From assembly GCF_001194135.2 (NCBI RefSeq), contig NC_068984.1, positions 133,648,390-133,712,389 on the forward strand: a stretch of 64,000 nucleotides of DNA. The letters run 5' to 3'. The notes below the pieces were generated by a model that was given only the letters and a program-made list of their open reading frames with translations, was not told the DNA's origin and did not search any database. This stretch comes from Octopus bimaculoides. Its lineage: Eukaryota. The translations under genes and the position numbers were made by a program. Numbering within the stretch: position 1 is the stretch's first letter; each line of letters opens with the position of its first letter. This document shows, piece after piece, positions 17,081 to 59,737 of the stretch.

Positions 17081-17398
17081 NNNNNNNNNNNNNNNNNNNN
17101 NNNNNNNNNNNNNNNNNNNNNNNNNNNNNNNNNNNNNNNNNNNNNNNNNNNNNNNNNNNNNNNNNNNNNNNNNNNNNNNNNNNNNNNNNNNNNNNNNNNN
17201 NNNNNNNNNNNNNNNNNNNNNNNNNNNNNNNNNNNNNNNNNNNNNNNNNNNNNNNNNNNNNNNNNNNNNNNNNNNNNNNNNNNNNNNNNNNNNNNNNNNN
17301 NNNNNNNNNNNNNNNNNNNNNNNNNNNNNNNNNNNNNNNNNNNNNNNNNNNNNNNNNNNNNNNNNNNNNNNNNNNNNNNNNNNNNNNNNNNNNNNNNN
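17081..17398. other. Assembly gap (others: 19334-19590, 23744-23793, 49259-49356)
   Basis: Runs of N, mostly flanked by microsatellites or repeats. Confidence 1.
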
Positions 17399-23743: not shown

Positions 23744-23881
23744 NNNNNNNNNNNNNNNNNNNNNNNNNNNNNNNNNNNNNNNNNNNNNNNNNNGTGTGTG
23801 TTTAAATATATTATTTTATACCAAAAATTTGGCAAAAGAATATAGTATTTTCAATGGATCAGTTTTGAGCTCTATTTAAAG

Positions 23882-32875: not shown

Positions 32876-35603
32876 ATGGAGCAACAAAATAAAGACAGTA
32901 ACCAGGCAGCTGCAAGAAAAAGTGCCATGATTTATATATGTGGAGGTAAGTTAGTATTGAGATTACTCTTATTAATTCACATTGTTTCAAATTGATCATG
33001 CAATTATTTTGTAACTTTGAAATGATGATGATGTGATTATATTTTTAGAATAACATTAGAGGGTTGGTGTAAGTGGAATTTTGTCCGACTTCAGATTCTG
33101 AGTTCAAATTCTGTGAAAGTCAGCTTTGCCTTTCATATTTTCGGGGTTGATAAAATAAGTACCAGTTGAACTATGGGGTTGATGTAATCTACTTACCCCC
33201 TCCCTCAAAATTGCTGCCTTGTGCCAAAATTTGAAATCAGTATTGATTCTAAGTTTTGTTTCAAAGCCTTTTCTATAATTCAACAAAATGTTTCTTGTTT
33301 TACTTGTAGAATGCCATCAGGAAAATGAAATCAAAGCCAGAGATCCAATTCGTTGTCGAGAATGTGGTTACAGAATTATGTACAAGAAACGAACAACAAG
33401 AAGTATCCTTTTAAATTTGAGATGGGTCTGGATGGCTTACAGAATACCTGATTTTAGGTAACACTTGGTAATAACTAAAATCAAAACGTGTAGAGCATCA
33501 CTTTGCAGTAATTGGGTATCTTTCTGGGCGAATATTTTTTTACTTTCTACTTGTTTCGGTTATTGGACTGTGGCCATACTGTTGACTCCAGTACTAATTT
33601 TAAATATCTAGTACTTATTGTATTGATCTCTTTTGCTGAAATGTTAGGTTATGAGGATGTGAACAAACCAACACCTGTTGTCAAGCAATAGTGAGCACAA
33701 ATACCTCCACACCCGGATAAGACGGACGATGAGTCTTCTATAGTTTCTGTCTATCAAATTCATTCATAGCACTTGTGAGCCCAGGGTTTATAGTAGACAC
33801 TTGATCAAGGTACTGTGCAGTGGTACTGAACCTGAAACCACGTAGCTGCAAAGCAAGCGTCTTAGCTACACAGCCATTCGTTCTTTCAGAAGTGAGCAGT
33901 GTCAGTAGCATTGTACTGTGTCAGAAACAAATGAAATGAAATTTTAAGGCAGCGAGCTGGCAGAAACGTTAGCACGCCGGACGAAATGCGGTATTTCGTC
34001 TGCCATTACGTTTTGAGTTCAAATTCTGCTGAGGTTGACTTTGCCTTTCATTCATTCAGGATCGATAAAATTAATTACTAGTTACGCACTGGGGTCGATG
34101 TAATCGACTTAATCCCTTTGTCTGTCCTTGTTAGTCCCCTCTAGGTTTAGCCCCTTGTGGGCAATAAACAAATGAAATGATACTTATTCATTTTCCTTCC
34201 AAGGTTACAAAGTTGAGCCTAATTAAACCAGTCTCTACATGTAACCTAGCAAAGAAAAAGATCACATAACTATCATTTTATTTATTCGACATGTTACAGT
34301 AGAACATGTAAGAGAAGAGTATAATTTGATGGCTTTGACATTAATATTTACTGTGGCTGTGTGATAAGTAGCTTGCTTACCAACCACATGGTTACGGGTT
34401 CAGTCCCACTGCATGGCACCTTTAGCAAGTGTCTTCTACTATAGCCTCGGGCCGACCAAAGCCTTGTGAGTGGATTTGGTAGACGGAAACTTAAAGAAGC
34501 CCGTCGTGTATATATATATATATATATATTTGTGTGTCTGTTTGTCCCCCCCAACATCACTTGACAACCGATGCTGGTGTGTTTACGTCCCCGTAACTTA
34601 GCAGTTCGGCAAAACAGACCGATAGAATAAGTACTAGGCTTCCAAAGAATAAGTCCTGGGGTCGATTTCCTCGACTAAAGGCGGTGCTCCAGCATGGCCG
34701 CAGTCAAATGACTGAAACAAGTAAAAGAGTACACCTCTGATCGTGAATGAAAAAAATCAAAAAAAAAAAATCGAGATTCAAAGGGACACAACCTAGTACT
34801 GTAATATATTTAGTGCTATGCTCAGCTGTTAGTTTAATGGTTGACCTTCAATATCAATACTAATTAGAATTTCTTTACTTTTAATGGATGTGTCTTTCAC
34901 TTTTACCAGTTTTGCAGAAACAATTGATCCCGATTATTTCATTTGTTCTTTGCGATTTTGAGAAACCTGTGACTAAGATCACATTTTGAAGGTTTTTCAC
35001 TGCACAATAAACTGATGTGTAAGTTTACAGAAAGTTTTAGGTCATCTGTCTTTTGCTAATTTCTTACTCAATCCAACTTAACCATTGATCGTAAAAGTTA
35101 GTTCTTGTCGACACATTTAATGCACTGAACCATAAAAAACAATAATTATGCAGAGATGGAAAACATATTTGACTTCATTAATGAAACCTAGTCTAAGTAC
35201 AAGTTGAATGTCATTTGTTCCTTCTCGAGCCATGCCTGGCTCATAAGGGCCGGTTTTATTGGTGTGTAAGTTCCCCACCTGGACTGGTGCCTGTCCATCG
35301 CAGGTGAGCTGCTAGTTGCAGGAGGAAAGAGTGAGAAAGTTGTGGCAAAAGAATCAGCAGAAGTTCGCCATTACCTTCTGCCGGAGCCACATGGAACTTA
35401 GATATTTCACTCATAAACATCTGCCTGGTTTGAGATTCGAACCTGCAATCCCTTGACCGTGAGTTTGCTGCTCTAACCAATAGGCCATGTACCTCCACAC
35501 AAGTTGATTGCTATTGTATATCAGGTAAAAAATCAGCTTTTTAAATGATTTCCAAAGTTATGAACCTTAACCCTGTTCAGTGATTGTGTTTGATGCTCGG
35601 TAA
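32876..35603 (+). CDS. POLR2K: DNA-directed RNA polymerases I, II and III subunit RPABC4 (RPB12); join(32876..32945,33310..33402,35581..35603), 61 aa
   Basis: [67 protein letters not shown]...[16 protein letters not shown]...VFDAR is the RPB12 zinc-ribbon signature. Splice phases are consistent. AATAAA at ~35648. The non-coding first exon was not located with certainty. Confidence 0.97.
33403..35580 (+). other. U12-type (minor spliceosome) GT-AG intron of POLR2K
   Basis: 5' splice site GTATCCTTTT is the U12 consensus. Branch point AACCTTAAC (~35563-35571) lies about 10 nt before the CAG acceptor, with no long pyrimidine tract. Confidence 0.9.
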
Positions 35604-36596
35604 CCAGAGAAGGATTCTTTTGCAGCTTCATTTGTAAATAGCCTTGAATAAAGCCATGTATATATAATTTTCATTTACTCAGTTTTGTTATTCATTTTTG
35701 TTGGAAACTTCTTAAATAAGATCAATCGACGATGGTTCCATATCTGTTATTTCAAGCAAACGGTCTAACATTTAGGACAACACATTTTTATTTTTTTTAA
35801 CCTGTCTAATTTCTAGTGTCAGCTGCAATCTCAGGTCAGGTAAAATTTTCCCCCATCACTCCTGAAGATTTTATTTAATGTAATTTATGCACCCCTAAAG
35901 TTTATTTTAATTCTTGTGAGAAAAATGCATAAATTACATGGGTTTTTAGGGTATATCACATTGGAGAAAAACAAGGCACCATGTTCATATAGATTCATCA
36001 TTTATTTACCAAATTGGAAGTTGTGAGAATTATAAAGTAATTCACAGCAAAAATAGGTTTTCTGTTCTTTAAACCTCTTTGATGTTTAAGATGGACTTAT
36101 ATTCACAAGATAGACCAGCTTTCTGTAATAAAGATAAAAAAAGTTTCAATGAATAATGAAAAATATTAAATGTTTAACCCTTTTACAATATTTCTATTGA
36201 AATATACTTTGTTGCGATTAATTTTGAAAAGTGTAATTCTGAGGTTTTAATTGAGATCACTTTGTATCATAGAACCAAGAACAACCTCATCTGGGTTAGT
36301 GTCAAAAGCGTTGACTAATTTGTACACATTTTTCACATGAATAAATCAACTTTTTGTGCGGCAATAAATTTTTAAAATAACAGAAAAAAACAGGTTCTAG
36401 AGTTTGAGATACAAAAGTATTGCAGAAAACTGGTGGTTTTAACTTCTGGATCTTTATTTATGCAATGAAATTTCAGCTTAGAGGAAATTTTAGATTATAA
36501 TACAGTTGGTTAATTTGGGACAAAGTGTTTCATAGCAGAAAGACTCAACCTGAAGACTATGTAACATTTAATGATTTCATGTTTAGCATAAGAATA

Positions 36597-36707
36597 AACT
36601 CGCTCAGTTTTAACTTTTCTTCAATGAGAGCCAGTGGCATTTACTGACAGCAGGCAACTGTCTGCACACGGCACCATCAGACGCAAATTACCACATCATT
36701 GCAAGTT
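36597..36707 (-). ncRNA. SNORD16: C/D box snoRNA U16 (SNORD16), copy 1
   Basis: Minus strand AACTTGC-AATGATGT(C box)-GGTAATTTGCG-T-CTGA(D')...CAGTTGCCTGCTGTCAGTAA...CTGA(D)-GCGAGTT terminal stem. The guide is complementary to the conserved 18S segment CGCAAATTACC. It matches my recollection of vertebrate U16 (GCAATGATGTCGTAATTTGCGTCTTA...ACAGTTGCCTGCTGTCAGTAAG...CTGAGCA). Confidence 0.9.
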
Positions 36708-37505
36708 AGCATCAGGTTTAAACACAACACAGGCATCAATGTAATCGGTATCTCATCAGTTGTCATGGTTACAATAAACAGGCTTGCTTTTGGTGAGAAA
36801 AAGTAAGAGAAAAATAAAACCATATGGATCATTTGCTACTAAACAATTATCATTACTTCTACTGAATATAGTTATGGTGGGCAGTGTAAGTCATAACATC
36901 CTATGTGACATGAATTCACCGGCCAGCACATTTATCACTCAGTCTTATGCCACCAGAATTGAACCACTCATATTTATATTCAAAGGAAGATATGAACTCT
37001 AATCTAGAGAAAGAAACTTTAATCCCTTCACCATTTATTCACATTTTGTAATGTCCACCATTAAAATTGATCTGAATATTGCTGAATTTTTGCAATTTAG
37101 TTTGGATATTATCTTTTCATCAAAACTTCTATGCATACTTGACTATGTTGTTTCTGAAGGGACAAAATTAGTTTACCTGCAAATCTTACTAAAAAAAAAG
37201 GTCAGGAGAAAACCTTTTTTTATTTTATGATGTCCATGTCGCTAATTGCAATTAATTTATTACTAAGACCCATCAAGCTGAGCAAATTCACAGTTGTGGC
37301 AGATACCAGAGTCACGCAGATTTAACATTGTGGCAGATACCAGAGTGGTTAGCGTTCCAATTTTCAAAATAATCTAACCTCAAGTAAATACACTATAGGC
37401 ATTTAAATAAACAAACCTATTTCTTTTTTAGTTATTTTCAACTCAATCATTACAGGACTGAGGTTTTGACTTGGAAGATTTTCAACAAGATGGTAATAGT
37501 AAATA

Positions 37506-37616
37506 AACCTGCTCAGTTTTAACTTATCTTCAATGAGAGCCAGAGGCATTTACTGACAGCAGGCAGCTGTCTGCACACTGCACCATCAGACGCAAATTAC
37601 CACATCATTGCAAGTT
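37506..37616 (-). ncRNA. SNORD16: C/D box snoRNA U16 (SNORD16), copy 2
   Basis: Same boxes and guide as copy 1. Variants: CAGCTGCC, CCTCTGG. Confidence 0.9.
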
Positions 37617-38129
37617 TGATCACCTTCAAACACTACATAGATAATGTGTTATGTAAATGTAATTAAACGGTAAGCTATTGTAGTAATGATATTATGTAAA
37701 CTACAATGACAGCAAAACTTTGTCTACACTCAAGCTTAATCCTTCTTTTGCTGGTTACTATTATGGTAAATAAAGATTATGCAAATTTGTTTATTCCCTT
37801 GCACCACATAAAACTAGAGTTTAGTAAAGTATCATGATAATTTTGTTTGCTTTCCATGCTGGTATGGGTTGAACAACTTTTAGAGATTGTGTTATACAGC
37901 CAGAAGCCTTTGTAATAAACTTCTTACAACGTACATCAGGCTAAACTCTAAATTATTAAAATACAAGAATAAACTTTCCATATTACATAAATTTAAAAAA
38001 TTAATTTTTCAGTTTAAATTAGATTATGCAAATAGTTTCAAATGGTTAAATTTGGGATGAGATGGCTGGTATTGAAAGGTTACTCTGAAAATTACATAAC
38101 ATTTATGCTTAAGTAGACACATTTATATA

Positions 38130-38240
38130 AACTCGCTCAGTTTTAACTTTTCTTCAATGAGAGCCAGTGGCATTTACTGACAGCAGGCAACTGTCTGCAC
38201 ACTGCACCATCAGACGCAAATTACCACATCATTGCAAGTT
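38130..38240 (-). ncRNA. SNORD16: C/D box snoRNA U16 (SNORD16), copy 3
   Basis: Nearly identical to copy 1. Confidence 0.9.
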
Positions 38241-38886
38241 AGCATCAGGTTTAAACACAACACAGGCATCAATGTAATCGGTATCTCATCAGTTGTCATG
38301 GTTACAATAAACAGGCTTGCTTTTGGTGAGAAAAAGTAAGAGAAAAATAAAACCATATGGATCATTTGCTACTAAACAATTATCATTACTTCTACTGAAT
38401 ATAGTTATGGTGGGCAGTGTAAGTCATAACATCCTATGTGACATGAATTCACCGGCCAGCACATTTATCACTCAGTCTTATGCCACCAGAATTGAACCAC
38501 TCATATTTATATTCAAAGGAAGATAGGAACTCTAATCTAGAGAAAGAAACTTTAATCCCTTCACCAACCTTTTTTTTATTTTATGATGTCCATGCCACTA
38601 ATTGCAATTAATTTATTACTAAGACCCATCAAGCTGAGCAAAATCACAGCTGTGGCAGATACCAGAGTCACGCAAATTGGCACCTGTGCCGGTGTCATGC
38701 AAATGGCACCCATTACACTCTCAGAGTGGTTGATGTTCCAATTTTCAAAATAATCTAACCTCAAGTAAACACACTATAGGTATTTAAATAAACAAACCTA
38801 TTTCTTTTTTAGTTATTTTCAGCTCAATCATTACAGGACTGAGGTTTTGACTTGGAAGATTTTCAACAAGATGGTAATAGTAAATA

Positions 38887-38997
38887 AACTTGCTCAGTTT
38901 TAACTTATCTTCAATGAGAGCCAGAGGCATTTACTGACAGCAGGCAGCTGTCTGCACACTGCACCATCAGACGCAAATTACCACATCATTGCAAGTT
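38887..38997 (-). ncRNA. SNORD16: C/D box snoRNA U16 (SNORD16), copy 4
   Basis: Nearly identical to copy 2, with a perfect AACTTGC/GCAAGTT terminal stem. Confidence 0.9.
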
Positions 38998-39536
38998 TGA
39001 TTATCTTCATACAACGTGTATCATATTAATGTAATTAAAACAAAGCAACAGTAGAACAAAGCTGTCAGAGTAACAATATTAACTCCGACTTTATGATGTA
39101 TTGCAACATAGCTATCAGCAAAATCTCACTATGGATAACAAAAACTCACTCCATTTGCTATTGTTAACAATACCCATCCATAAGTAAATTGTATTAAAAA
39201 ATCAAACAGTTATTGGATTGAGTTACAAGAAACACCTAACTTCAGATCAAATAACTGTCATCACTGAAAAACCAAAAGTGAGTACAGTTTGGCCACCAGA
39301 TTACTCAAGACATTAACATTTTCATGAAACAATGATGCTCTACTGCAATAGTTAATAATGATGATATATATATATAGCTGTAAAAGGACTTCCTCAGTTT
39401 TCTTACTGATTCCTATACATTGCATCCTTTTCCTCATGAATTGCTATTTCTATCAGAATTATAACTGATCCTCTCCATGAAATCTTATAACAACATTTCA
39501 TAGACGGGATATTATATTATATTTCAATGTTAAATC

Positions 39537-39645
39537 AACTTGCTCAGTTCCAATGTTCTTCAATGAGAGCCAGTGGCATTGTTGACAATAGGCAGTTGTC
39601 TGCACACTGCACCATCAGACGCAAATTACAGCATCACTGCAAGTT
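39537..39645 (-). ncRNA. SNORD16: C/D box snoRNA U16 (SNORD16), copy 5 (divergent)
   Basis: Stem, C box (AGTGATGC), guide GTAATTTGCG-T-CTGA and D box are retained. The second element is changed to CAACTGCCTATTGTCAAC. Confidence 0.8.
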
Positions 39646-40289
39646 AATGCTCAAAGAAAAACAAAAAAAAACCTTTGTGTTTTCCATATCCAAGACTAAT
39701 TCAATGAGATACCAAATGTCCAACTTAATTACTTTATATGAAAATTCCAAAAATAACTTGGTAGAAATTGATTTGATAATTAATAGAACCATAATTCAAG
39801 TTACTTTTCTGGCTATTTCTGTTGGATGTTCAAGCTAGTATAGATAATATTTTGTGTTGTTTTACAAGATGAATTTCCAACTGCATGCCATTACCAGTTA
39901 AACTCAGAAGTTTGTAGCATGCAAGAGTTACAATACAGCAAAATTTTTAACATTACTTGTCACCAATCCTGTACCTTAACTTAATAGCATGAATTCTCAT
40001 TTACTACACAGTGGGGTATTTACTATACAGGGCAGGGGGGCTCCGAAAGGGGTCTCAGGGAGTAGCACCCCTACCTTCCTGAGCTAGTTTTCCACCACAT
40101 TTCTTAAAATGATCTACCTCGGTTGCAATGGCATTGAGGTAGATCTGGCCACCCCTGTTAACGGGGACAAAACCCGGATTTAAAAAACTAAAACAGGGAC
40201 AAAACCCAGATTTAAAACCTCGTAAAACATTAGATGATGATGAAATGCCTTTTCATTATACACCACAAATGTTCAAAATTATTGCATTG

Positions 40290-40846
40290 GAATGCACTCC
40301 TGGCAACTCTCATGGCTTGACTAGTGCTTTGTGAGAATTTAAAAAGTGCAGCTCCCAAAATTACTGCAGAGCTTAATGACCACCTCGAGAACCCAGTTTC
40401 CACAAAAACTGTTTGCCGGGAGCTGCACAAAGCCAGATTTCACAGGAGGACTGCAATCAGAAAACCACTACTTACAAAAACAAATGTTGCAAAGCATTTA
40501 GAGTGGAGTCAAAACCTACAGAATTGGTCCTTAGAGCAGCAGAAGAATGTTATTTTCTCGGACAAGTAATCCTTTACCTTCATTTTATCTGATCAAATTC
40601 ATTTTATGTTTGTGAAACTGTTTCCGGAGGGAAACGCAATCTTTCAGGATGATAATGCACCAATTCACACAGCTGAAGTTGTTACTGAATGGCACGAGGA
40701 ACATTCTATGAAAACAATTCAAACTTTGTACGAGTCCATACCTCGTAGAATTTAAGCTGTAATTACTGCTAAAGGTGGTCCTAGCCCATATTAAAATAAA
40801 TTTGTTTGAAATTTTAAAGTGTTTCCATTATTTTGTCCAAACCCTG
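40290..40846 (+). mobile_element. Internally deleted Tc1-type transposon fragment between U16 copies 5 and 6
   Basis: ITAELNDHLENPVSTKTVCRELHKARFHRRTAIRKPLLTKTN...VIFSD, QDDNAPIH, IPRRI*AVITAKGGP and terminal AGTGTTTCCATTATTTTGTCCAAACCCTG. Confidence 0.85.
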
Positions 40847-41350
40847 TGTGTGTGTGTACCTCCTTGCCTTGACATTACATAATGTTGTAAATGAATGCCT
40901 TTCCTTTCCAATATTCTGTTAGAATGTCTTCCAATGGGGAAATATTACCTTGCTTGGAAACAGAAAACCATAGAAAACCTGCTTCAATAATCTCTCTCCA
41001 GCCCAGGCAAGCAAGGGAAAGTAGACATTAAAATGGCAATAATTCTGATAGCTATCATTCTCCTTAGATCACAGTCAATACTATCGTTATTTATATTGAT
41101 GTCTCCTTGTCTTTCTACCAATAAATAGACCTCCAGTAAATTCTACCCATATCCACACTAAACATACCAACCTACCATTTGCTCCTTCACTATTATACAC
41201 TTTCCAACCTGAATCTCTCAGTTAACTCACTGAGAAGACCTAAGAGGTACTGTAGATAATTTTTTCTACTTAATATTAAATTATCATACAAAATAGCACC
41301 TAAAATTACAGAATCCTTAAACAAAATTTAATGAATTCTTCGCTTCAATT

Positions 41351-41460
41351 AACTTGCTCAGTTTAAAACTTCTTCAATGAGAGCCAGTGACATTAATTGA
41401 CAGCAGGCAACTGTCTGCACACTGCACCATCAGACGCAAATTACAGCATCATTGCAAGTT
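41351..41460 (-). ncRNA. SNORD16: C/D box snoRNA U16 (SNORD16), copy 6
   Basis: AACTTGCAATGATGCTGTAATTTGCGTCTGA...CAGTTGCCTGCTGTCAA...CTGAGCAAGTT with a perfect terminal stem. Confidence 0.88.
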
Positions 41461-42423
41461 AGCTCAACACTATAGTACAAAAATATCACTAAACAGAGAG
41501 GAAAAAATTATCGTTCATGAAATGACAGGAATATGTTGTAAACTTCGCCTTAATAGAATATTACTAGTGGTAAATACGTCCACAACAAAATACTTTCTTA
41601 CATCTTGTATTCATAGCATATACCAAGCAAATAAAATCAAAAATCTTTTAATTATTCCCAACCAGCATCAATATGGCATTGAAGAGTAAGTTCTCAAATA
41701 AACATTGAATAATATGACACCAGAATAGCGAGTATTCATGTTATATACATTATCTGGAAAAAGTATAACACATGCATGAAATATTACTTGCCCACGTTTT
41801 GTTTCTATATATTTTCTGCAGAAATCGATTATAATCTTCTTTGAGATTTATTCAAAAGCAAATGACTATTCATTTTTGTTTCTAACTGAAAATGCAGGCA
41901 TGACTCACTTTGCAACTACATGGCTTCAAGTTCAGTCCCATTGCATGTCTTTCTCCTTCTATAACTCTGGGCCAAACAATACCTTTTGAGTTTATTTGCA
42001 TGTTTGGGCACATGCACCATTGAGTTTGTGTAACCTCCACCACTGCTCAACAGCTGGTGTTGGTTTGTTTATGCTCTTATAATTTAGTGATTTCAACAAG
42101 AGACCAATAGAATAAGTACCAGAGTTTAAAGGAAAAAGGAAAACTGAATTTTTGCCAAAATATAATGGGTATTTAGTACTAATGGCTAAAAAGACATTAC
42201 ATTATATATCAACTTTATATCCCACTATACTTTTAGCTTTTTTTTTGTCAAGTTATGTTCCAAGTACTACTGTAATATATTGTTATATTTGTTTTACAAA
42301 ATCACTATAAACTTTTAAGAGACAGAGTGCGTTTTTAATTAGAAATATTGTAGCAAAAAAGGATCAACGAAAAGAACTTACCATATTCTGTATACAAGCA
42401 GGCTAAAGCCTTCTTATGTTTTG

Positions 42424-45400
42424 CTAAACGCAATTAAATGGCGGTTCACCACCATCATTATATTTTGCAGCAATGACAGTTCTGATATCTTTCATGGTAG
42501 TCTAAAAATTACAAAAATGTCATTTTGTCAGTAATATATTCAGTGCCTTAAATGAGAAAAATAAAATATTGTAAAGGTTATTACATTTTCTGATTACAAT
42601 TCAAAATGGAAATATTGGATTCTTAGAATCAATAACACTGTATAAGCCATTTATTGTGATCATTTTAGGATAGAGCCTTTTAGATAACATTAAGGAGATG
42701 ATATAACAATATTCTGTGCATGTCTTAGAGCCACTAATTTCCAATAACTAAATGATAATGATGATTTAGTAACACTGAACAAGATTATCATCAGCTGCTG
42801 TCAATTCATTTGAAGTGTGGCATAGCATTTTTACTTATTTCACTTTACATGGTTCAAACTTTAGCAGAAATAGTACAATAGATTCAATACATTATAGCAC
42901 TTAGATTTGTACTTCAGGATATCATCATCATCATTTAACATCTGCCTTCCATGCTGGTATGGGTTGAAAGTTTCTACAGGATCCATGAATTGGAGAACTA
43001 CATCAAACTCCACTATCTGCTTTGAAATGGTTTCTATGGCTGGATGCCCCTCCAAATGACAACAGTTTTACTGAGTGTATTGGGTGCTTTTTCTTGTGGT
43101 GCCAGCACTAGTGAGATGGCCATATAACTAGCAAGATTAAAAAGACCCCCTCAACTGAACGAGAGCATAACTGGTGCTCTGACAGCAACAACATTGAGGG
43201 TTCCAGTTGATCCAATCAATGTTAACAGCTTGTTCATGAAATTAACATGCAAGTGGCTAAGCACTCCACAAACAGGCACACCCTCAACATAGTTCCCAAG
43301 GAGATTCAGTATGGTACAAACTGTGACAAGGCTGGCCCTTTGAAATAAAGGTAATACTCATTTTTGCTGGTTGAGTGAACTGGAACAATATGGAACAAAA
43401 TGTCTTGCTTAAAGTCACAATGCACTGCCAAGAATTGCACTTTGTGACATTACAATCATGAGCCAATACTCTAACCACTAAGCCATGTGCCTTCACTGGG
43501 TCGTCATTTAACTTCCGCTTTCCATGCTAGCATGGGTTGGACGATTTGACTGAGGACTGGTGAACCAGATGGCTACACCAGGCTCCAATTTGATTTGGCA
43601 GAGTTTCTACAGCTGGATGCCCTTCCTAATGCCAACCACTCAGAGTGTAGTGGGTACTTTTACGTGCTACTGGCACAAAGACCAGTCAGTATAGTAAAAA
43701 GAGAGGCAGCATAATGCTAGATGTTGAGTGATTGAAGTAGGATATAGGGGTGGGAAATGGTTTCCTGCTGTAAAGGAGAGACATAGCTACCCCACATAAT
43801 ATAAAGGTGGGTGGAAGTAATTAGGGAGAAACTGGAAAGAGTAATAAAGATGGTGACACCAAGCTATAAGAAGGTAAATAGAAGAGAAAGTAGAAGTGGA
43901 TCAGGAATGGTAGGTAGGTAGAGTTTGCAAGAGCATGGGATAATTGTAAGAAAAGGTAGTGAATTGTAAACAAGGACAATAGTAAAAGAGTTGGAGGGGA
44001 AGGGGGTAAGAAGCAGGAGTGGAGGTGACGACGGCGGCGGGGGGGGGCAGAGATCTGTAGTTATGCCATTTACTGTACTTGAGAAGACATGTCAAGCTAA
44101 GTGAAATTGTAGTCATGACCAATGCCAGTGACATGTGGAGTGGTTGGCATTAGGAAGGGCATCCAGCCATAGAAACCAAGCCAAATCAGACTGGAGCTCT
44201 GTGCAGCTCTCTGGCCTATCCATCCCAGTCAGCCCATCTAACCCATGCCAGCTTGGAAAATGGATTGCTAAATGATGATGATGATGATGATATATATATA
44301 TATATATCATCATCGTTTAACGTCCGCTTTCCATGCTGGCATGGGTTCGACGATTTTCACTGAGGACTGCTGAACCAGATGGCTACACCAGGCTACAATC
44401 TGATTTGGCAGAGTTTCTACAGCTGGATGCCTTTCCTAACGCCAACCACTCCGAGAGTGTAGTGGGTGCTTTTACATGCCACCATATATATATATATATA
44501 TATATTGTGCAAATGTACATTTGTGTAAAATCAACTTGCTTGAACAGAATGTTTGTAAAATTGACCAATAACCCTAAACACCTCAAAGCAGATTATGTAC
44601 ATTTTCTCAATAATAAATGGAATACAAATTACCTTAAAATCAGGATATGGAATCCACTTCAGAGCAAGCAATCTCTTACGATCAGCCTTAGAAACTGATG
44701 ACAAGTATTTGGTAATTGGTTTGCATGTCTTGCAGGGGCCAAATAAGCGGTTTAGTTCTAAACGGATATCTCCTTCACCAACATACAGCGTTATCCATGT
44801 TTTACTAAATTTATACCAGCGAAGTACTATATAAACACCTTCCATGGATGTTGGTCGTGCATCGTACCTCTGAAATGTTGCATTATACAAACTGTCTACG
44901 AATGCTTCTGTTTTCTGTAAGAAGAGAACATTTCAAAATTTACGTTTCACAAAAGATGAAACAGATTTTTAGCTAAGATCCAAAAGCTACATCTAAAAGA
45001 ACATAATACAAAGAAAAAAAAAATCTAGTCAGCACAATCCTGAAATAGCTTCTGCAATATCTGGTTTAACAGATGAACAGTAGAAGTTAATAGTTAACAA
45101 ACATGCTGAAAAATGGAGTGCTTTTTCTTAGACAAGGGATTTCATCAGCTTATTTGCAATACTTACACTGTCTAATGGAGCTTTTGTTTTGTTTACTTGA
45201 GCAGGCGTGATAGTGGCCCCACCAGCTGGCCTAGAAATAACAATAAAATATTAGCATCAGACAAGACTTGGAGAAAAAAGTAGTGGATGCATTTAAATAG
45301 ACTGGTCAAATTAAGAAGAATTTACCCTGACTACTTTCAATACTATTTCACTTTTCTAGAAAGAGCAATATTTCCTTAATAACATTTCCTCATTGATCAT

Positions 45401-46989
45401 AATCATTTAACGTGTTTTCCATGCTGGCATGGGTTGGACGGTTTAACCAGATCCAAAGAGCAGGAGGATTGTGTCAAGTTCCAAAGGCTGCATTGGCATA
45501 GTTTCTGTGGCTGGATGCCTTTTCTAAAGTCAACTACTTTAACATTAATTTTTAAAAAAAAGAAAAAATGCATCGGCCTAGAATTTGAGAAAAAAAAAAT
45601 TATTATTAACTTGTAAGCAAGAAAATTCCACAATATTTTCTCGAAGGCATGTTCCTTTAAATGCACACACACATCAAGTGGCAAAAGTAAAGAAAAATTC
45701 ACTTAGGCTAGATAAAGTTACCAACTGGAAGATTGTTTGGCAATATGGAAATTAGATGTGTTGACTTTCGTTTTTTTAAAGATGTCAGTATTAAAAGTTA
45801 CTGGTACTAATTTATGTTTACATAAGATTAAATTCCAAGTGCATAAAATTTTGCATTTCAAATTTATTAGAAACTGTGCTAAGGGCGAACTTGAAAGGTT
45901 TAAGATTATTCCAACAAAGTATCTTATTTGCCGCAACAAGAAAGCCCGAAGTTCTGACAAGTAATCGGTTTTACTAAGACTGAAACTTGCCATCAAATTA
46001 CCTAAAAAGAATAATTGTATGTAAAAAGTGAACAGATAATGAAACGACGTCAGAACTGGAATAAAAGCTCTAACTCCGAGAGGTAGAATTTCATACAGAG
46101 CTAGCAAGAGATGGATCGTAAGATTGCCATATATATATATATATATAAAAACTTCTTACAATCTTTTTAATCTTATGAGGAGTTAAATGAATTGGATTTG
46201 AGGATAGAAGATAGCTTATTAAGTTAAAGCACAAAACCGGTCATTGTAATACGGTCTCGATCGTTTAGTGAGTATTCACCAAAGTTTTATCAATACTTTC
46301 ATACGGGAAAACTATCATATATCTACTAACGTCATCATCTCTTACGAGACTTAGCTGTCTGTTCAAATGAGTAAAGATATATTATAAAGAAAGAAATACA
46401 TTAATAACTTTTAAAAAATCCAAAGTGTCTGGTAATATTGACACGTGACAATTTCTTAGAACTTAAAATACATTTTCTCAGAGCAGCTATTTATAATACC
46501 TTCTTAGAAGCTCTTCAATTTGAGAGAAGGGAACAATCGGTTATACTGAACCTAATACTTTGGACCATTCTTCTTGAATAGTACCCTATATTTCATCGAT
46601 CCGAAAGGATGAAAGTTGATCTAGGAGGGATTTGAACTCAGAACGTAATGGTGCAAGAATAAATATTTCTTTATAAATTAATAATTATAAGAAATAGAAA
46701 AAAAAAGCTTAACAGAATAAATTTGAAGAATGATGTTAGTTTGAGAATTAAATTCAGTAACGAAGATGATCTCTCTCCTAGTTAACTAATTATTTAAATA
46801 GGACTCTGGGTGATATATGGAGAAATGAAGAAAGAAACTGACGAAAAAGGGAGGGAGAGGATACGAGGAGACATGTGCTGCTTTAGGTTATGTGGCCACC
46901 ATGTTGTAAAATAAAGTACAAAAATTACATGATTTTCAACCAACTTACGGTTTGTAAGCTTGCTTATTCTTTTTGCGTGCCATAGTCAT
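42424..46989 (-). CDS. Uncharacterised small GIY-YIG-like protein; complement(join(42424..42501,44633..44869,45167..45230,46949..46989)), 139 aa
   Basis: Four exons with canonical sites and matching phases (2,0,0): MTMARKKNKQAYKPPAGGATITPAQVNKTKAPLDSRYDARPTSMEGVYIVLRWYKFSKTWITLYVGEGDIRLELNRLFGPCKTCKPITKYLSSVSKADRKRLLALKWIPYPDFKTTMKDIRTVIAAKYNDGGEPPFNCV*. The GVY...YVG...DIR...PPFN pattern resembles the GIY-YIG superfamily. The three 3' exons are well supported; the first exon is less certain. Confidence 0.75.
45722..46001 (-). CDS. Alternative/cassette exon of the GIY-YIG-like gene (ATG at 45993 gives a 216-aa form)
   Basis: Acceptor attattctttttag| at 46001 and donor TG|GTAACT at 45722 (phase 2, in frame with exon 45230). 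Open frame MASFSLSKTDYLSELRAFLL...KQSSSW of 90 aa. Confidence 0.45.
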
Positions 46990-48702: not shown

Positions 48703-50451
48703 CCAGGAAATATATATGCCAAAGAAACGGGGAAATCAGCCCTAAGGTCCTTATGGAGTAATGTGGACTAACCATAACCTTTTTTGTTTTTATAATTGAC
48801 ATTAATTTCCACCTTATTCGGTCCTTTTCTAGGACAACCTGTGATGAGGCAGCACCTGAATACCACAAATTGGATAGTCCAAGAATTTTGAGTTCTAGAT
48901 GTGGTCTTCCGCAAAACTACAGCTTTGTGTATTGAATTCTTCTCTGCTACAGATCTTCCTTCACCTTATGCATTTCTTATGCTAAAGCAACAAATAAATT
49001 AATTAGTAAATATGTATCTTTTCCTCAATTTAAAATTCAAATTTTAGATGAACCCAGAAATAGTACAGATCAAGAATTTTTCCACCCTTTTAAATGTTAT
49101 ACATGAGCCAGCAATTCATCATTGAGCCATGTTGTAGACTTTATACATCACTTCCTATGTGTCATTTCTTGAAGTTTGCTCACCTTTTGAGTATTGCGTT
49201 TCAGATCCACACCACAAACATTTGCACTGTCTGAACTTTTTTAGATGTAATTGTAAGGNNNNNNNNNNNNNNNNNNNNNNNNNNNNNNNNNNNNNNNNNN
49301 NNNNNNNNNNNNNNNNNNNNNNNNNNNNNNNNNNNNNNNNNNNNNNNNNNNNNNNNGGGCTGGTAGAATCATTGGTGACCAGTGATGAAGTCACAGGAAA
49401 AAAGTCACAATTTTGGCTGGGACACAATTAATTTATGGTGGCCAGTAATAAAGTCACAGGAAAAAAAGTCACAATTAATTTATGGGATCTGGACAAAACC
49501 CCCTCAGACACACACACACACCCGCCCGAACAAAACCCCTGTGACTTTTTTACCTGGATTCAAGCCATTAGCACGCCAGGCAAAATGCTCAACAGCATTT
49601 CATCAATCTTTATGTTCTGTGTTCACATTCTGCCAAGGTTGACTTTGCCTTTCATCCTTTTGAGGTCGATAAATAAGTACCAGTTGAAGACTGGGATCGA
49701 TGTAATCAACTTATCTCCTCTCCCAGAATTTCAGGCCTTGTGCCAAAATTTGAAACCGATATTCTTATAGTTGTAACCCTTTGAAGCATAGACCAATTTG
49801 AGTTGGCTGAAATTTCCTGTTTCTGAGGTGACATAAAATGTTACTTTTTCCTAACACATTCACTGCTGTTTTCTGTTGCTATACATTCATCTACAGTAGC
49901 CAGATAGCTTCTGTGGTTGCTTGACCGAACCTCCCTTGACAATAGCAATGAGCAAATCATTTGTTCCTCCCCCATTTTTTTTTTTTTAGGAGGCACATGG
50001 CTTAGTGGTTAGGGTGTTGGACTCATGATTGTAAGATTATGGTTTTGATTCCTGGACCAGGTGATGCATTGTGTGCTTGAGAAAAACACTTCATTTTTGC
50101 ATTACTCTAGTCCACTCCAGGGAATATATATGCCAAAGAAACAGGGAAATCAGCCCTAAGGTCCTTATGGAGTAATGTGGACTAACCATAACCTTTTTTT
50201 GTTTTTATAATTGACATTAATTTCCACCTTATTTGATCCTTTTCTGGGACAACCTGTGATGAGGCAGTACCTGAATACCACAAATTGGATAGTCCAAGAA
50301 TTTTGAGTTCTAGATGTGGTCTTCCGCAAAACTACAGCTTTGTGTATTGAATTCTTCTCTGCTACAGATCTTCCTTCACCTTATGCATTTCTTATGCTAA
50401 AGCAACAAATTAATTAATTAATATGTATCTTTTCCTCAATTTTAAATTCAA
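48703..50451 (+). repeat. ~335-bp direct repeat pair (48703-49040 and 50117-50451) on either side of an N gap
   Basis: Near-identical CCAGG(A/G)AATATATATGCCAAAGAAAC...TCCTCAATTT(A/T)AAATTCAA with a few substitutions. Confidence 0.9.
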
Positions 50452-53422: not shown

Positions 53423-56400
53423 ATGGGGAAAGTCAACACGATATTTTCTTACTTTTCAAAGACACCCAAGAAGACTACCGAGAATCAAGTGCTTTCTCCG
53501 AAGACTCCGAGTAATTCAGGTAGCAATAGCAATCTACAAGCAACATCTAACAACACCACACCAACTAGTAGTAAAAAGACGAATGAGAAAAATGGCGAAA
53601 TTACTCCTGGTAAGACAGAGATGAATTAGCATGTTTTATATTTGCTATGATAAAAAATTAATGTTTAATTTTCGTAAAAATATCAGTAGACGTGATGATG
53701 TGGTAGCCATACATTCGTTGTACAGGGTGTCCAGTAGCAAAGTTATTGATTGAGTACCTGAGAGTGAAATAGAAACATGAGTAAATATAAAAAATATTTA
53801 CAAATTTTCTATCGTCTATATCTATAAAATAAATTATAAAATTTAAAATTTGTGTTGCCCTTAATATTTTGCTGACTTTAGTGGTAGCTTTAATTTTTGC
53901 TTTAACTTGGTTTTCAACATAAAGAAACAAAACTTTTCTTGGACTCGAAGGAAGAATCAATATCTTAGTTCATTGTCTTGCAATCTAATTGGATTTAATC
54001 TAGCATTTTTTTGTCTGCTTTTTCGACTTTGTTTAAATACCATTTATTTTAATGAGAATGGTTTTCTAAATATGACTGAAAACAACCTGCTGTCTTTAGT
54101 GAAAGGGTCTTTTAATTCGATGTCATTCTCATGTAGTGTTGTTAAGTTAAATATGTTTTGGGCCAATACTGGCCGAAATCAATGTATGAAAAAAAAAAAA
54201 AACTTCCACAGTCGATACAAATCTAAGGGAATGCAATGTTATAGAGAAGTAGTTCATTTGATAGTTTGTGAAGGGTCACAAAAGTTTTATTGTTAGTATC
54301 GCAGGCAGTGCCTCCGCACAGACTAAATCGAATGACTGAAACTAGTTAATACCCTTAAAATTTCATAGTTTATAGTAGCGGCGTAGCTAGAGTGTATGAT
54401 CCTGGGACAAGATCTTGATTTTGCTTTTCCGTCGGCAAAGTCTATATAGGCCCAGAAGTGCTGCGACCCTCTCCTCCTCGTCATTACTCTACTGGATTTA
54501 TATAACCTTGTCATTGAGTATCATGGTCCCTTATATTTCACTATTTCACTCTCTACATTCTGATGAATAATTGCCGACTTAATTGAAGTCTTCAAAAAGA
54601 AAAAAAAAAATGCATTTTTCAAGGAGAGGTGCGATTCTGCATTAGCCCGATCTGTGCATTATATCATTTTTCTTCCGGCGAAATTCTGGTTTAAGTAGAA
54701 TCTCTTTATACTATCATTACTTATAAACTGTTGCGTGTAAACAATGTAAATAAAATACCTCGCTACATTCAGAAATATTTACGGTTTGTGAAACACCTTA
54801 ATCTAGGTTTGTTCAGATAAAGTAATTCATATCAAAAATTTGGACCCTGAATTCTTCTCTACCTACACACTGGGGATAGCTGCAAACTGCAGACTACGTT
54901 TTAGTATAAAGAAAATATACCACTTATTCGGTGTCTTTAATTCATATGTCAGAAGAGAAACAGTTTTGAAATATATATCATAGTTCAATCATTGTAGCAT
55001 TGTAGTTATTGCCAGAGAAATAACAACCTGTCCTCTCATCCCCTCTTTTTCCCTTACACTGACCCAAATTTTCCTGCCTCTACAAAACTTAAAAACCTAC
55101 TAGCCAACAAGAAAGCTTCTAGGGGGGTTACTCTATCTGCTAGAAATCGTAGCGAAATATTCACTCTTAATAGGATACATTGGATAATGTAGTTCTCGAT
55201 ACATAGTCTTGAAAGCGACTGTGCAATCTACCCCTATCTACTTCTACTCACTTCATACCTTGAGGGGCCACCTGGACACTTTATCATCACTATCTCTGAA
55301 GCTCCTACTGATCATTCTCACTCTCTCTACTGAAAGTGAGCAGCCATGCAGCTCCTCTACAAGAATCTGTTCTGCCCTCCCACCTCTCATTTTAACCCCT
55401 CATCCCCTGCCATAGAGCTAGTTCCCCTCCTTAAGGGTTTGTAACCTTTTGAGATGCATGGTAACCTCACTAGTGCTGTCGCACATAAAAAAAGCACCCA
55501 GTACATGCTATAAAGTGGTTGGTGTTAGGAAAGGCATCCAGCTGTAGAAACCATACCAAAGCAGACAATGGGGCATGATGTAGTCCTTGGATCCATCGAA
55601 TTCTATCAAACCATCCAACCCATGCCAGCAGAGAACATGGATGTTAAATGATGATGGTGATGATCCGGTGCTCCATTGTATAAAGTAGTGAGTGTGTGGC
55701 TTTCTCTTAGTCTTTAACCAACTACCTATGGGTTGTAGGTCTATTTGATCAGAGGTGATGTGATGTTGCAAGTGACATATTTTTACTTTTTTAATTCCAA
55801 AACAAAAATATACTGTGTTAATGTGTGTTCCTTGAATATTTTAGTTCCTGATTTTTTTTTTGAAACAGTTCCCTTCAATGTTCTTGTTTGAGAGAATTAA
55901 ATTTGACTTCCATTGCAACTTTTCCATAGCATTTTGGGTTGTTTAATGTAGAATGAGATAGAGTGAAGTCGTTATTTTAATTACGAATAAGGTTTCCTGA
56001 AATGGAACTAGTTTTTTCTTTTTCAATTACAGTAACTTACAGTTATATGAACCAACAATGGCGATTTTTAGGAATTCTTCCAGTTTTCAGATAATTTCTG
56101 GGCAATGGGATTCCTACCTTATGTAGAAAAAGAAATGCAATTAAAAAATGTTCTCAAGACGGAGATAATATCTAGTTGTGATGCTGAGTTGAATGATCAG
56201 TTCTTTTATAACAACACTTTTGGTATATTATTACCATGGAAACAGAATTTTTCTCTTGGTGTTTTCAATTAATTCAGTTCCTAATGTTTGTTTTTTTTTT
56301 TCTTGCAGAATTTGAAGTTGGTGATATTGTATGGTCAAAGCTTGAAGGTTATCCATGGTGGCCTAGCATTGTATGCAACCACCCAACTTCTAAGGTTCAC

Positions 56401-57340
56401 ATCAAGAAAGGCAAAGTGACGGAGATTCATGTTCAATTCTTTGATGACCCAATTTCTAGAGCATGGGTTAAAGCCAGGTAGATTTATTCATTTTGCTTAT
56501 TTTTATTGTTTTGTTTCACTATTAAAGGTAAAGGTTACCTTCTAGAGTCAGGCCAACTCATTAGGGCTGGTTTCCATGATTTATAAATTCCCCACCTGGA
56601 TGGGATGCCAGTCCATCACAGTGTTTCACTATTGTTGTAGAACTAATCAAGTTAATAACTCTATATTTATTTCCTCTCATTTTAATGCATTGGGTGCTTA
56701 TATACATCCAGATAGTCTTATATGTTATTGTTGTTTAGGCCTCAAGTCAACCATGATAGAGCAGAACTATGACCAAAGATATTACCCTAACCCTAATGTC
56801 CTTTTTATTTTGTATATCTAAGACTACATTGTCTAATAATTCTTTTCTCTTTAAGACAGTTGGTTGTGAGTGAGAGATATTTGGTTGCTATTTCTTGTAG
56901 AAGTAGGTGTTATACATGGGGATTCTCTTCTGCTGCTTTTCCCTGCAACTCAGTGTTAGTTGTACTCTGCATGTTCATTGAATCTTTTAAAAGAAAGTTA
57001 CTCTTGTAAGTTATGTCCAAAGATTCTCTTCCACTGTTCATCACTACAGCACATAAGTAGACCAATTTCTGACTAGCTGACTCTGAGGTAAATTTCTTGC
57101 CGGAAATGTGTCATAGAATAATGCAGTCCTGAATACACCATTGTTTACTAAAAAAAAACCCCAAAATCATGACTTGAATATAGTTGATCATGTCTGCTCA
57201 GTCAGGGCGTTTTGGGTATAAACACATTTTTCTGATCCCCCTTACATTCTCTCAAGTATTCCTCAGAAACTTTATCTCCTCCAATTTATTCTTAATAAGG
57301 GTACCCATTTTATAAGCATACTCTTATGACACCACTCTTC

Positions 57341-57379
<39 letters not shown>

Positions 57380-59698
57380 TCAGTTTTTATTCGATTCTCC
57401 ATTTTAGATTTGTGAAGCCATTTACTGGGGCTGATGCCAAAGAAGCTAAAACTGGTGGCCAGTTTTTCTCAATGGATATGTCTCAAAGGAAAGCAACCAA
57501 TGATGCTGACAAGGCAGTGAAAATGACAAAAGAAGATAGACTTGGGCTTATTACTGAACTTCAGCCATCTGAAGATGAATTTGAAATGGACGACTTAGAT
57601 GGTGAGTTGGTCTTCAAATATAAGGTGTAGTGATTCTGTTAGGCTGGTTTTTTTTAGATGGTGTGAGAAGGCTGTTGCAATGTGATTGGTAGCATAGACA
57701 GTGTTTTAAAAATAATTTTAGGTGATCTGTGTTAGGATGCATTTGTTGCATTTTGGACAAAGAAGGTTGGTGATAAACAATTCTGACGGAGGATTTGAAA
57801 CCGTATCATGAAAATTGTTTGAAAACAATTATTCGAAAAACAGTTATTCGAAATAAATATAATTTGTGTACTTGATTTTTAATTTTATCGTTTTTGTTTA
57901 AATGAAATAAAAAATTTAGAATAATTAACATTTCGTATAATTGTCCTTTTGAATAATTTTCATTCATTTGAATTTTCCATTCGAATAAATGTTTGTCAAA
58001 TAATTGTTTTGGAACAATTATTTTCGAACAATATTCACATAATCTTTGAAACAGACTTCATGTTTGTTATAGAATCTTATGGAAAAATGTGATTAGAAAT
58101 AAGGAAAGAATAAATATCTAAAGTCTTGAAAAATGGTTACTGCAGGCCTATAAGAATGTTGATATTGTGGTTGACATTGGCATTCGTTTTTTTACACGTC
58201 ACTTTATTGTTATTTTTTATATTGTTTTATTAGATATTTTTGATGAAGAAATGGAAGAAGGTGATTCAGAAAAGAGCAAGGAAAATTTGGATGTATCTAA
58301 TACAGTGAAAGAAAAGAGTTCTAAGGTAGGAGTTTAGAAAAATGTTAACTATAGTTTACCTAACAGCCTCTGTGTCCATGGTTAACCAGTCACTAATTTT
58401 TAATACATTTAATCACACCAGCAAAATCTTTTGTGGCTATATTGCTATTAAATGAAGGTGTATGTCATAGTGGTTTAAATATTCAGCTCATGATCACAGT
58501 GTCATGGGTTCAACTCCTGTACTGGGCAGCTTAGGTCCTTGAGCAAGACACTTCATTTCATGTTGCTTCAGTCTAAAAATGTGATGTCTAGACAAGGGTA
58601 CACACAACAGGTTTCTTTCAGTTTCCATTGACTAAATCCACTCACAAAGCTTTGGTCAGTATGGGGCTATAGTAAAAAAAAACACTTGCCCGAAGTACTA
58701 TACAGTGATACTGAACTGAAGACCACATGGTTAGGAAGTAAGCTTTTTAATCATACTGCCACATTTTTACCTATATCCACTATATGTGCCATGTGTCTAT
58801 AACCAGTATATTTTTGTTAAATAGAATGTGGACCTGTTTTCGATTATTAGTTAGAGGTGTTGCTTTTTTTTGCTTCAGTGTTCTTACATAAATAAATACA
58901 TACATGTCTGTTATCTCTCTGTTTGAAATTTTATGTCAAAGAATTCTTATAAGATTTTAATTTGCTTTATTTTGTAGTCCAAGGAAGATGAAAGCAAAAG
59001 TTCAAAACCACCCAAACGTAATGCAAACAAACGACGCAGAATTATTGTAGAACCAGACAGTGGTGATTCCAGTAAGTTTTTAGTATACTGAATCTTTGTT
59101 ATCTTCTACTCAATACTTGAGATATGCCAATGTCTTTGACTAGTGTCTGTCACTCATGAAGTACACTTGATTGATATTTGGTGGGGAAATGATTCATTAT
59201 GGTCTCCAGTTCAGTCCCACTGCATGGCCCCTTATGCAAATGTCTTCTACTGTAACCTTGGGCCGACCACAGCCTTTTGAGTGGATTTGGTAGATGGAAA
59301 CTGAAAGAAACCTGTGTATGTTCATTTGTCCCCCACCACTGCTTGACAACCTGTATTGGTGTGTTTACATCCCATTAACTTAGAGGTTTGGCAAAAGAGA
59401 CCAGTAGAATGAGCACCAGGTTTTAAAAAATTATTTGTTGGACTAAAATTCTTCAAGGTGGTGCCCCAGCATGGCCACAGTCTAATGACTGAAACAAGTA
59501 AAAGATTAAAAAAAAAACAGCTAAAAAGATATGGCTGGTCTTGCATACTGAGTGATTTGTTTTTTTATATTGGCTTTTCCATGCTGGCATGAATTGGCTG
59601 ATGACTTGCTGAAGTAAATGAATTATTGCTATGCAAGAACAGTCAGATCACCTCCACCACTGAACACATATGCAAAATACAAAGAAATAAATGATTGG

Positions 59699-59737
<39 letters not shown>

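Follow-up and report, generated by a model that had tools for sequence, protein, structure and literature searches.

A SNORD16 array beyond the stop codon of a conserved mollusc gene in octopods

Here we describe a locus within a 64,000-nucleotide (nt) stretch of the Octopus bimaculoides genome (contig NC_068984.1, positions 133,648,390 to 133,712,389; hereafter the window), in which a protein-coding gene on the minus strand, LOC106880171, is followed on the same strand by six copies of the small nucleolar RNA (snoRNA) gene SNORD16, also called U16. Judged from the layout of the locus in four octopod genomes and from splicing in a relative, the LOC106880171 transcript very probably extends beyond its stop codon by way of a splice donor and serves as host to the SNORD16 array. 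Window positions 32424-56989 are identical to part of chromosome CM046604.1, and all coordinates below are those of the window unless another sequence is named.

LOC106880171 encodes a product of 154 amino acids (aa) annotated as "uncharacterized protein". Its C-terminal exons matched XP_014785502.1 at 100% in a protein search, and the four-exon coding sequence (CDS) recovered with tblastn equals that record, with exons totalling 465 nt, or 154 codons plus the stop. The gene and its downstream parts are laid out as follows, with a caret marking exon-intron boundaries in splice-site sequences here and throughout.

46949-46989, minus strand: coding exon 1, start ATG at 46989, placed by tblastn; donor ACC^GTAAGT at 46948.
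45167-45230, minus strand: coding exon 2, placed by exon mapping.
44633-44914, minus strand: coding exon 3, containing the stretch GVYIV...LYVGEG that a first-pass annotation of the window labelled GIY-YIG-like.
42382-42501, minus strand: last coding exon, with CDS at 42501-42424, stop codon TAG at 42426-42424, then 42 nt of 3' untranslated region (UTR) at 42423-42382.
42376-42381, minus strand: post-stop 5' splice site ATG^GTAAGT, score 5.67, conserved, its homologue spliced in RNA contigs of a relative.
36123-42381, minus strand: interval of 6,259 nt, predicted to be excised as one or several introns, with the SNORD16 array inside and the conserved donor and conserved terminal acceptor as its bounds.
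35985-36122, minus strand: conserved non-coding terminal exon of about 135 nt, acceptor AG at 36124-36123, AATAAA at 36006-36001, 3' end approximate.

LOC106880171 is a genuine protein-coding gene, one of a small, uncharacterised family that molluscs have conserved. A profile run against 1.8 billion representatives returned 19 family members at E<=1e-3, drawn from molluscs and transcriptomes and including Solemya and Babylonia, and E-values reach 1e-17 outside cephalopods. The 154-aa open reading frame (ORF) is 76-78% identical in Argonauta.

The feature that ties the gene to the sequence beyond it is a splice donor in the 3' UTR. The first-pass annotation had reported a GTAAGT donor at 42381, 42 nt past the TAG, and this proved correct, with the exon ending at 42382 and the stop codon at 42426-42424. 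Scored with splice weight matrices (human frequencies, checked against the sites of LOC106880171 itself), the post-stop donor reaches 5.67, as against 1.8-2.6 for the three coding donors of the gene. Donors scoring this high number 36 in 128 kb, or 0.28 per kb, and the chance of meeting one within 50 nt of a stop is about 1.4%. Among the candidate splice sites named in the first-pass annotation, this first donor alone exceeds chance expectation.

We compared the orthologous loci, each with 10 kb of flank, of Argonauta hians (L002), O. vulgaris (L003) and O. sinensis (L004), using positions 14050-19700 of L002 and, for L004, alignment and Rfam only. The donor is present in all three. At 43 nt past the stop it reads ATATG^GTAAGTTC in both O. 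vulgaris and O. sinensis, and at 27 nt past the stop it reads AACATG^GTAAGTTT in Argonauta hians; the corresponding distances are 42 nt in O. bimaculoides and 28 nt in the relative described below. Argonauta has kept the donor although the adjacent UTR carries a 15-nt indel and the intron has diverged past the GTAAGT(T) core. Further afield, the orthologue in the snail Babylonia areolata (L015, 15154-15162) reads ...TAT TGA^GTAAGT, a donor-like hexamer immediately after the stop, and the post-stop intron may be older than cephalopods. No SNORD16 was found within 10 kb downstream of the Babylonia and Solemya loci.

RNA from a relative demonstrates use of the homologous donor. P0022, a 165-aa protein about 50% identical to the LOC106880171 protein and likewise encoded next to MSH6, has an uninterrupted ORF on ten Logan RNA-seq contigs. 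In six of the ten, from six sequencing runs, the stop codon TAA is followed by 28 nt and the junction CATGATTG^ATTTCATTTACAG. These six extend roughly 70-143 nt past the junction, and four of them have an A run at the end; in contig L011 the sequence continues beyond a 15-nt A run, which makes at least that run genomic and not a poly(A) tail. Two further contigs continue from CATGATTG into GTAAGTG... and on into an intron of more than 1.1 kb, and the remaining two end at the junction. Because six contigs join across the site and two retain the intron, splicing at the homologous donor is genuine in the relative. Two other Logan transcripts (L017 and L018) were uninformative for the wider phylogeny.

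Downstream of the donor, Rfam confirmed six U16 copies on the strand of the gene, including copy 6 at 41456-41355. Against the Rfam RF00138 gathering score of 45 bits, five of the six lie above (50.1-53.0 bits) and copy 5 lies just below (44.6 bits). In the direction of transcription the array reads as follows.

41355-41456, minus strand: SNORD16 copy 6, 50.1 bits; orthologue of O. vulgaris copy 1 by alignment.
39541-39641, minus strand: SNORD16 copy 5, 44.6 bits; box C is GUGAUGC; orthologue of O. vulgaris copy 2.
38891-38993, minus strand: SNORD16 copy 4, 51.7 bits.
38134-38236, minus strand: SNORD16 copy 3, 53.0 bits.
37510-37612, minus strand: SNORD16 copy 2, 51.7 bits.
36601-36703, minus strand: SNORD16 copy 1, the last in the array, 51.2 bits; 478 nt upstream of the terminal acceptor.
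36593-36710, 37506-37617, 38130-38243, 38887-38998, 39536-39648 and 41351-41463: spans of the SNORD16 copies with their external stems.

The first snoRNA stands 925 nt from the donor. Same-strand SNORD16 arrays also lie downstream of the gene in O. vulgaris (eight copies), O. sinensis (seven) and Argonauta hians (five), with scores up to 63.5 bits. In an alignment of 19 copies from three species, box D (CUGA) and the guide GUAAUUUGCGU, which stands just before box D' (CUGA), are invariant in all 19. Box D' itself is invariant in O. bimaculoides and differs by one base in the O. vulgaris copy Ov6 (CUGAC versus CUGAU), and box C is AUGAUG or GUGAUG throughout. The SNORD16 guide is predicted to pair with 18S ribosomal RNA (rRNA) at the site equivalent to human A484, which would be 2'-O-methylated. 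Every SNORD16 is also framed by a 7-bp external stem, AACUUGC/GCAAGUU, whose variants are all G-U wobbles and which is conserved in Argonauta; it is longer than the 3-bp terminal stem of the Rfam model. Long external stems go with splicing-independent assembly of small nucleolar ribonucleoproteins (snoRNPs).

Copies 4 to 1 go back to a recent tandem duplication that took in two copies and about 1.4-1.5 kb and whose long repeat arms are 97-100% identical, and the copies other than 6 and 5 form an Octopus-specific subfamily amplified to different numbers in each species. O. vulgaris also carries a degenerate ninth SNORD16-like copy (L003, 18374-18480), 78-88% identical to various O. bimaculoides copies and without an Rfam report at E<=0.001; it falls between the donor and the first good copy, within about 1 kb of sequence that lacks an O. 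bimaculoides counterpart. Around the snoRNAs, cross-species similarity mostly ends about 3-15 nt beyond the ends called by Rfam, the exception being Argonauta copy 3 against O. bimaculoides copy 5, where it extends about 30 nt upstream and about 20 nt downstream. Argonauta-Octopus BLAST found no conserved promoter-like block upstream of any copy or between the donor and the array. Since similarity stops so close outside the snoRNA ends, no conserved promoter is apparent.

In the same BLAST of downstream sequences, the conserved blocks were the snoRNAs and a single further segment, in which Argonauta 19208-19355 matches window 36148-36001 (77% over 157 nt, E=1e-27). Conservation starts exactly at an acceptor AG (score 5.3), opens with a perfect run of 33 nt, stays near identity for about 60 nt, takes in GGTAAATAAA (AATAAA at 36006-36001) and then fades. 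This pattern at 36122 bears the sequence signature of a 3'-terminal exon. We considered and rejected a coding exon: the changes between O. bimaculoides and Argonauta looked synonymous, with an in-frame 6-nt indel, but a 7-nt indel separates O. vulgaris and O. sinensis from O. bimaculoides, and the exon is therefore non-coding. The first-pass annotation had put the 3' end at an acceptor near 36550 followed by AATAAA at 36458-36453. Those motifs are present, but the acceptor scores -0.4, the hexamer is one of 23 AATAAA/ATTAAA hexamers in 42423-35900, and the conserved terminal exon lies further on, outside the range that annotation had covered.

These parts suggest how the locus would work. Transcription would pass the stop codon, and the donor 42 nt beyond it would join the exon that begins at 36122, either directly or via small unconserved exons; that exon, running to about 35985, would supply the poly(A) signal. 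The excised 6.26 kb would carry six SNORD16 copies with intact C, D' and D boxes, rRNA guide and 7-bp external stem, and snoRNPs would be released by trimming of the excised intron RNA. A single transcription event would yield both the protein mRNA and the snoRNAs, no switch being required. The idea that the protein mRNA doubles as a snoRNA host through intron sequence past its stop codon was already part of the first-pass annotation, and both the conserved layout and the splicing in the relative bear it out. Four octopod genomes have kept donor, array and terminal exon as a set, and the SNORD16 copies lie on the sense strand of the host between the conserved donor and the conserved terminal acceptor. 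Taken as a whole, the host-gene reading is the best explanation of the locus, and we hold it with good confidence.

How the interval is divided is a separate matter. As a single intron it would measure 6,259 nt in O. bimaculoides, about 8.7 kb in O. vulgaris and 4,978 nt in Argonauta. We give one large multi-snoRNA intron something close to an even chance, regard several introns with lineage-specific exons as only slightly less likely, and think it quite unlikely that the host model is wrong altogether. If there is a single intron, the copies would be separated endonucleolytically or products resembling small nucleolar long non-coding RNAs (sno-lncRNAs) would form. In its fullest version, which we propose tentatively, all five to eight SNORD16 copies would lie in one intron of 5-8.7 kb whose donor stands less than 50 nt from the stop; every transcript would give a protein mRNA immune to nonsense-mediated decay (NMD) plus a multi-snoRNA intron, and release would come about by splicing-independent assembly of snoRNPs on the conserved external stems together with endonucleolytic cuts between copies, or the intron would also give sno-lncRNAs in a cephalopod.

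Under a rule reported by Hirose and Steitz, a metazoan host intron usually carries a single snoRNA, about 70-90 nt ahead of the 3' splice site, and the model of the first-pass annotation keeps the one-per-intron rule. It shares the host of our best explanation and differs on fine structure and NMD: small non-coding exons would leave one SNORD16 in each intron, junctions more than 50-55 nt past the stop would send the transcript into NMD, and early polyadenylation would produce a stable mRNA instead. We consider this arrangement unlikely. Argonauta-Octopus BLAST found no internal exon conserved with Argonauta, and the exon proposed at 41249 to 41175 or 41167 has its motifs in place (acceptor ctacAG^, donors ATG^GTAGGT and TTG^GTATGT) but fails because both donors sit in an insertion missing from the congeners.

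40174-41175, no strand assigned: insertion of about 1 kb specific to O. bimaculoides and lacking in O. vulgaris and O. sinensis, with the candidate donors 41175 and 41167 inside.

At the place of these candidate donors both congeners have AAATG^TTTTGT, which leaves the proposed exon without a donor in either species. The donor-like GTAGGT and GTATGT were created by the insertion, which carries a Tc1/mariner-like remnant on the plus strand (40321-40752; Pfam HTH_Tnp_Tc3_2, E=6.5e-11). A second proposed junction, CAG^GTAAAC at 37176, is likewise present as a motif, but the stretch around it has no counterpart in the paralogous spacer between copies 4 and 3, which fits the spacer lengths.

Splice-site statistics across the interval give the one-per-intron arrangement little to build on. 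The interval holds 2.1 donor-like and 1.8 acceptor-like sites per kb, compared with 2.3 and 2.4 on the whole strand and 2.6 and 2.7 in MSH6 introns; its other candidate splice sites are thus ordinary, at the background density of ordinary introns. The best acceptor-donor pair is stronger on the sense than on the antisense strand in 14 of 16 inter-snoRNA spacers, as small exons would predict, but the excess is expected anyway because the transcribed strand is T-rich. A 234-nt candidate exon (acceptor 37155, donor 36919) that recurs in O. vulgaris paralogues speaks for the arrangement, as does a strong donor in Argonauta at L002 19138. Against them, the short "B-type" spacers (481-521 nt) hold no convincing exon, and neither Octopus has a usable donor between the last snoRNA and the terminal acceptor: between copy 1 and that acceptor none scores above -1.3 in O. 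bimaculoides and none above 0.4 in either species. An ATTAAA at 42339-42334, just within the intron, could serve early polyadenylation but is not conserved in Argonauta, and the mRNA of the relative has only about 143 nt past its junction. Identity profiles between O. bimaculoides and O. vulgaris run at 85-100% throughout with no exons discernible, and are uninformative on this point because the two species are too alike.

The proposed NMD toggle has precedents, since human host genes uncouple snoRNA output from spliced-RNA output through NMD and NMD-sensitive host isoforms are documented (PMC4233243, PMC5238794). At the octopod locus the position of the junction gives the toggle no support. 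In three lineages the sole demonstrated junction site follows the stop by 42-43, 27 and 28 nt, within the zone of about 50 nt; the first junction is less than 50 nt away in every lineage, and beyond the 50-55 nt at which NMD would be triggered no junction shows conservation. In vertebrates, the exon junction complex (EJC) is deposited about 20-24 nt upstream of a junction, and junctions within about 50 nt of the stop do not trigger EJC-dependent NMD. By analogy, an EJC at such a junction would be within reach of the terminating ribosome. With its first junction less than 50 nt from the stop, the spliced LOC106880171 mRNA is predicted to be a normal, NMD-insensitive message. That so short a distance has been kept suggests selection for mRNA stability, the opposite of a toggle; the same conservation would be pointless if later junctions triggered NMD.

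Several points weigh against the host-gene reading or its single-intron version. The spliced contigs come from a relative that is about 50% identical and not from Octopus, and the readable 1.15 kb of the relative's intron contains no SNORD16. Exact-protein look-ups for Octopus transcripts (P0001, P0002 and P0003) gave genome records only, and the Octopus junction 42382^36122 is inferred from sequence. The distance from the last copy to the conserved acceptor (478 nt in O. bimaculoides, about 497 nt in O. vulgaris, 241 nt in Argonauta) misses the 70-90 nt rule for vertebrate box C/D snoRNAs, and a single intron with six snoRNAs is predicted to demand endonucleolytic separation of the copies. 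The 50-nt EJC rule comes from vertebrates and may not carry over to molluscs. Finally, the Argonauta site at L002 19138, CAG^GTGAGG, which precedes the terminal acceptor by 98 nt, is exceptionally strong: it scores 9.3, and 128 kb of Octopus sequence offers a single comparable site. No usable acceptor was found between the last Argonauta snoRNA and this site, which may mark a penultimate exon, a recursive splice site or chance.

That the array belongs instead to a separate non-coding host, or to independent snoRNA units with their own promoter, while the protein mRNA ends soon after its stop, is very unlikely: such clusters and hosts exist in many eukaryotes, the 925 nt from donor to first snoRNA hold several poly(A)-like hexamers and the look-ups returned no Octopus transcript, but a strong donor kept at 27-43 nt past the stop calls for a downstream acceptor and the only conserved one lies beyond the array, the homologous donor is in use in the relative's RNA, neither the donor-to-array stretch nor the sequence upstream of the copies holds a conserved promoter-like block, and the linkage of gene and array has survived the Octopus-Argonauta split despite copy turnover.

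The label GIY-YIG-like given to the protein found no support in Pfam, PDB sequences or Foldseek, and we reject this identity. At E<=1, neither the exon nor the full protein nor any one of the 19 family members matched GIY-YIG profiles (Pfam PF01541 and relatives), and a profile search of PDB sequences with the family returned nothing relevant. An AlphaFold2 model built on the 19 sequences reached a predicted local distance difference test (pLDDT) score of 84.7 and a predicted template modelling (pTM) score of 0.81. Foldseek found no match to it in the PDB at E<=0.001 (best E=0.59, template modelling (TM) score 0.19), and Foldseek with two AlphaFold models was empty in both cases. The predicted strand-strand-helix...strand-helix order fits the GIY-YIG fold without being diagnostic of it. 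The GIY-YIG catalytic set comprises the Tyr of GIY, the Tyr of YIG, an Arg, a Glu and an Asn. In the family alignment the residues proposed as catalytic are not conserved: Y63 alternates with F or L, Y79 with F, C or L, and R86 with Q, S, G, A or N. Invariance is confined to P56, G61, G83, Y105, K121 and W122. The LOC106880171 product is a conserved mollusc protein without an assigned fold family.

The gene has close neighbours on both sides. MSH6 (53423-64000, plus strand) is arranged head-to-head with LOC106880171, the start codons being 6.4 kb apart. On an RNA contig of the relative (L005, 577-5284), only 179 nt divide the MSH6 ORF from the ORF of the LOC106880171 homologue on the opposite strand, an arrangement suggestive of a shared bidirectional promoter with overlapping 5' ends. 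At the other end, a POLR2K/RPABC4 zinc-ribbon exon (33279-33458, plus strand; Pfam PF03604, E=8.7e-15) is convergent with the terminal exon, and the 3' ends of POLR2K and LOC106880171 may be close together or overlapping. An abundant short interspersed repeat (core ...CCAGCATGGAAAGC...) occurs at 44234-44353, 43520-43680, 42930-43070 and 37848-37870, and in Argonauta too; it yields spurious sub-threshold matches to microRNA families (mir-2513, 43.5 versus 89 bits). Runs of N, which mark assembly gaps, stand at 17081-17398, 19334-19590, 23744-23793 and 49259-49356, all outside the locus discussed here.

The octopod locus resembles several known snoRNA hosts without matching any of them. In vertebrates, U16/SNORD16 sits in an intron of RPL4 (L1). 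As there, the octopod snoRNAs belong to family RF00138 and lie on the host's sense strand between donor and acceptor of a protein-coding gene, with no promoter of their own apparent. Unlike RPL4, the octopod host is an unrelated, uncharacterised mollusc gene and not a ribosomal-protein gene, its snoRNA-bearing intron would follow the stop codon, it carries five to eight tandem copies in place of one, and the gap between its last copy and the 3' splice site is 478 nt as against about 70-90 nt. The SNURF-SNRPN/SNHG14 unit of mammalian 15q11-13 likewise continues 3' of a protein-coding unit into tandem box C/D genes (SNORD116 and SNORD115), with unit duplication and species-variable copy number. 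The two systems share no homology: each mammalian repeat brings non-coding exons of its own, whereas repeated exons are only candidates in octopods; the mammalian snoRNAs are orphan guides, whereas the octopod snoRNA is a canonical rRNA guide; and the octopod array spans 6 kb against hundreds of kb.

Introns with two or more snoRNAs are known from the intronic snoRNA clusters of Drosophila and plants. Should the octopod 6.26 kb be one intron, a candidate so far, its six snoRNAs would also invite comparison with sno-lncRNA introns (PMC5054931), with sno-lncRNA formation or endonucleolytic processing in octopods as predictions only. Hosts of the GAS5/UHG type and the NMD-sensitive isoforms of coding hosts (PMC4233243, PMC5238794) share intron-released snoRNAs and a separately regulable spliced RNA. 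Unlike them, the octopod gene has an ORF conserved across molluscs, its only supported junction lies less than 50 nt past the stop, so that the defining NMD trigger is absent, and its terminal exon is, between Octopus and Argonauta, the most conserved part of the interval bar the snoRNAs, unlike the throw-away exons of such hosts. A literature search found no mention of cephalopod snoRNA hosts or of these gene identifiers.

The octopod locus is a real, conserved new example of a known arrangement, in which the fine structure, 3' end and NMD switch of the first-pass annotation are not supported. For annotation, it would place the true 3' end of LOC106880171 6.4 kb past the stop codon. To our knowledge, NMD has not been studied in molluscs; the distance of less than 50 nt kept across deep cephalopod splits hints that EJC-type NMD rules constrain mollusc 3' UTR introns. 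The locus offers a clean, conserved invertebrate case of post-stop snoRNAs with ongoing tandem amplification, at five, six, seven and eight copies in four species. It also indicates that a conserved guide for rRNA methylation can exchange one host for an entirely different one, RPL4 in vertebrates as against an uncharacterised, lineage-restricted gene in octopods.

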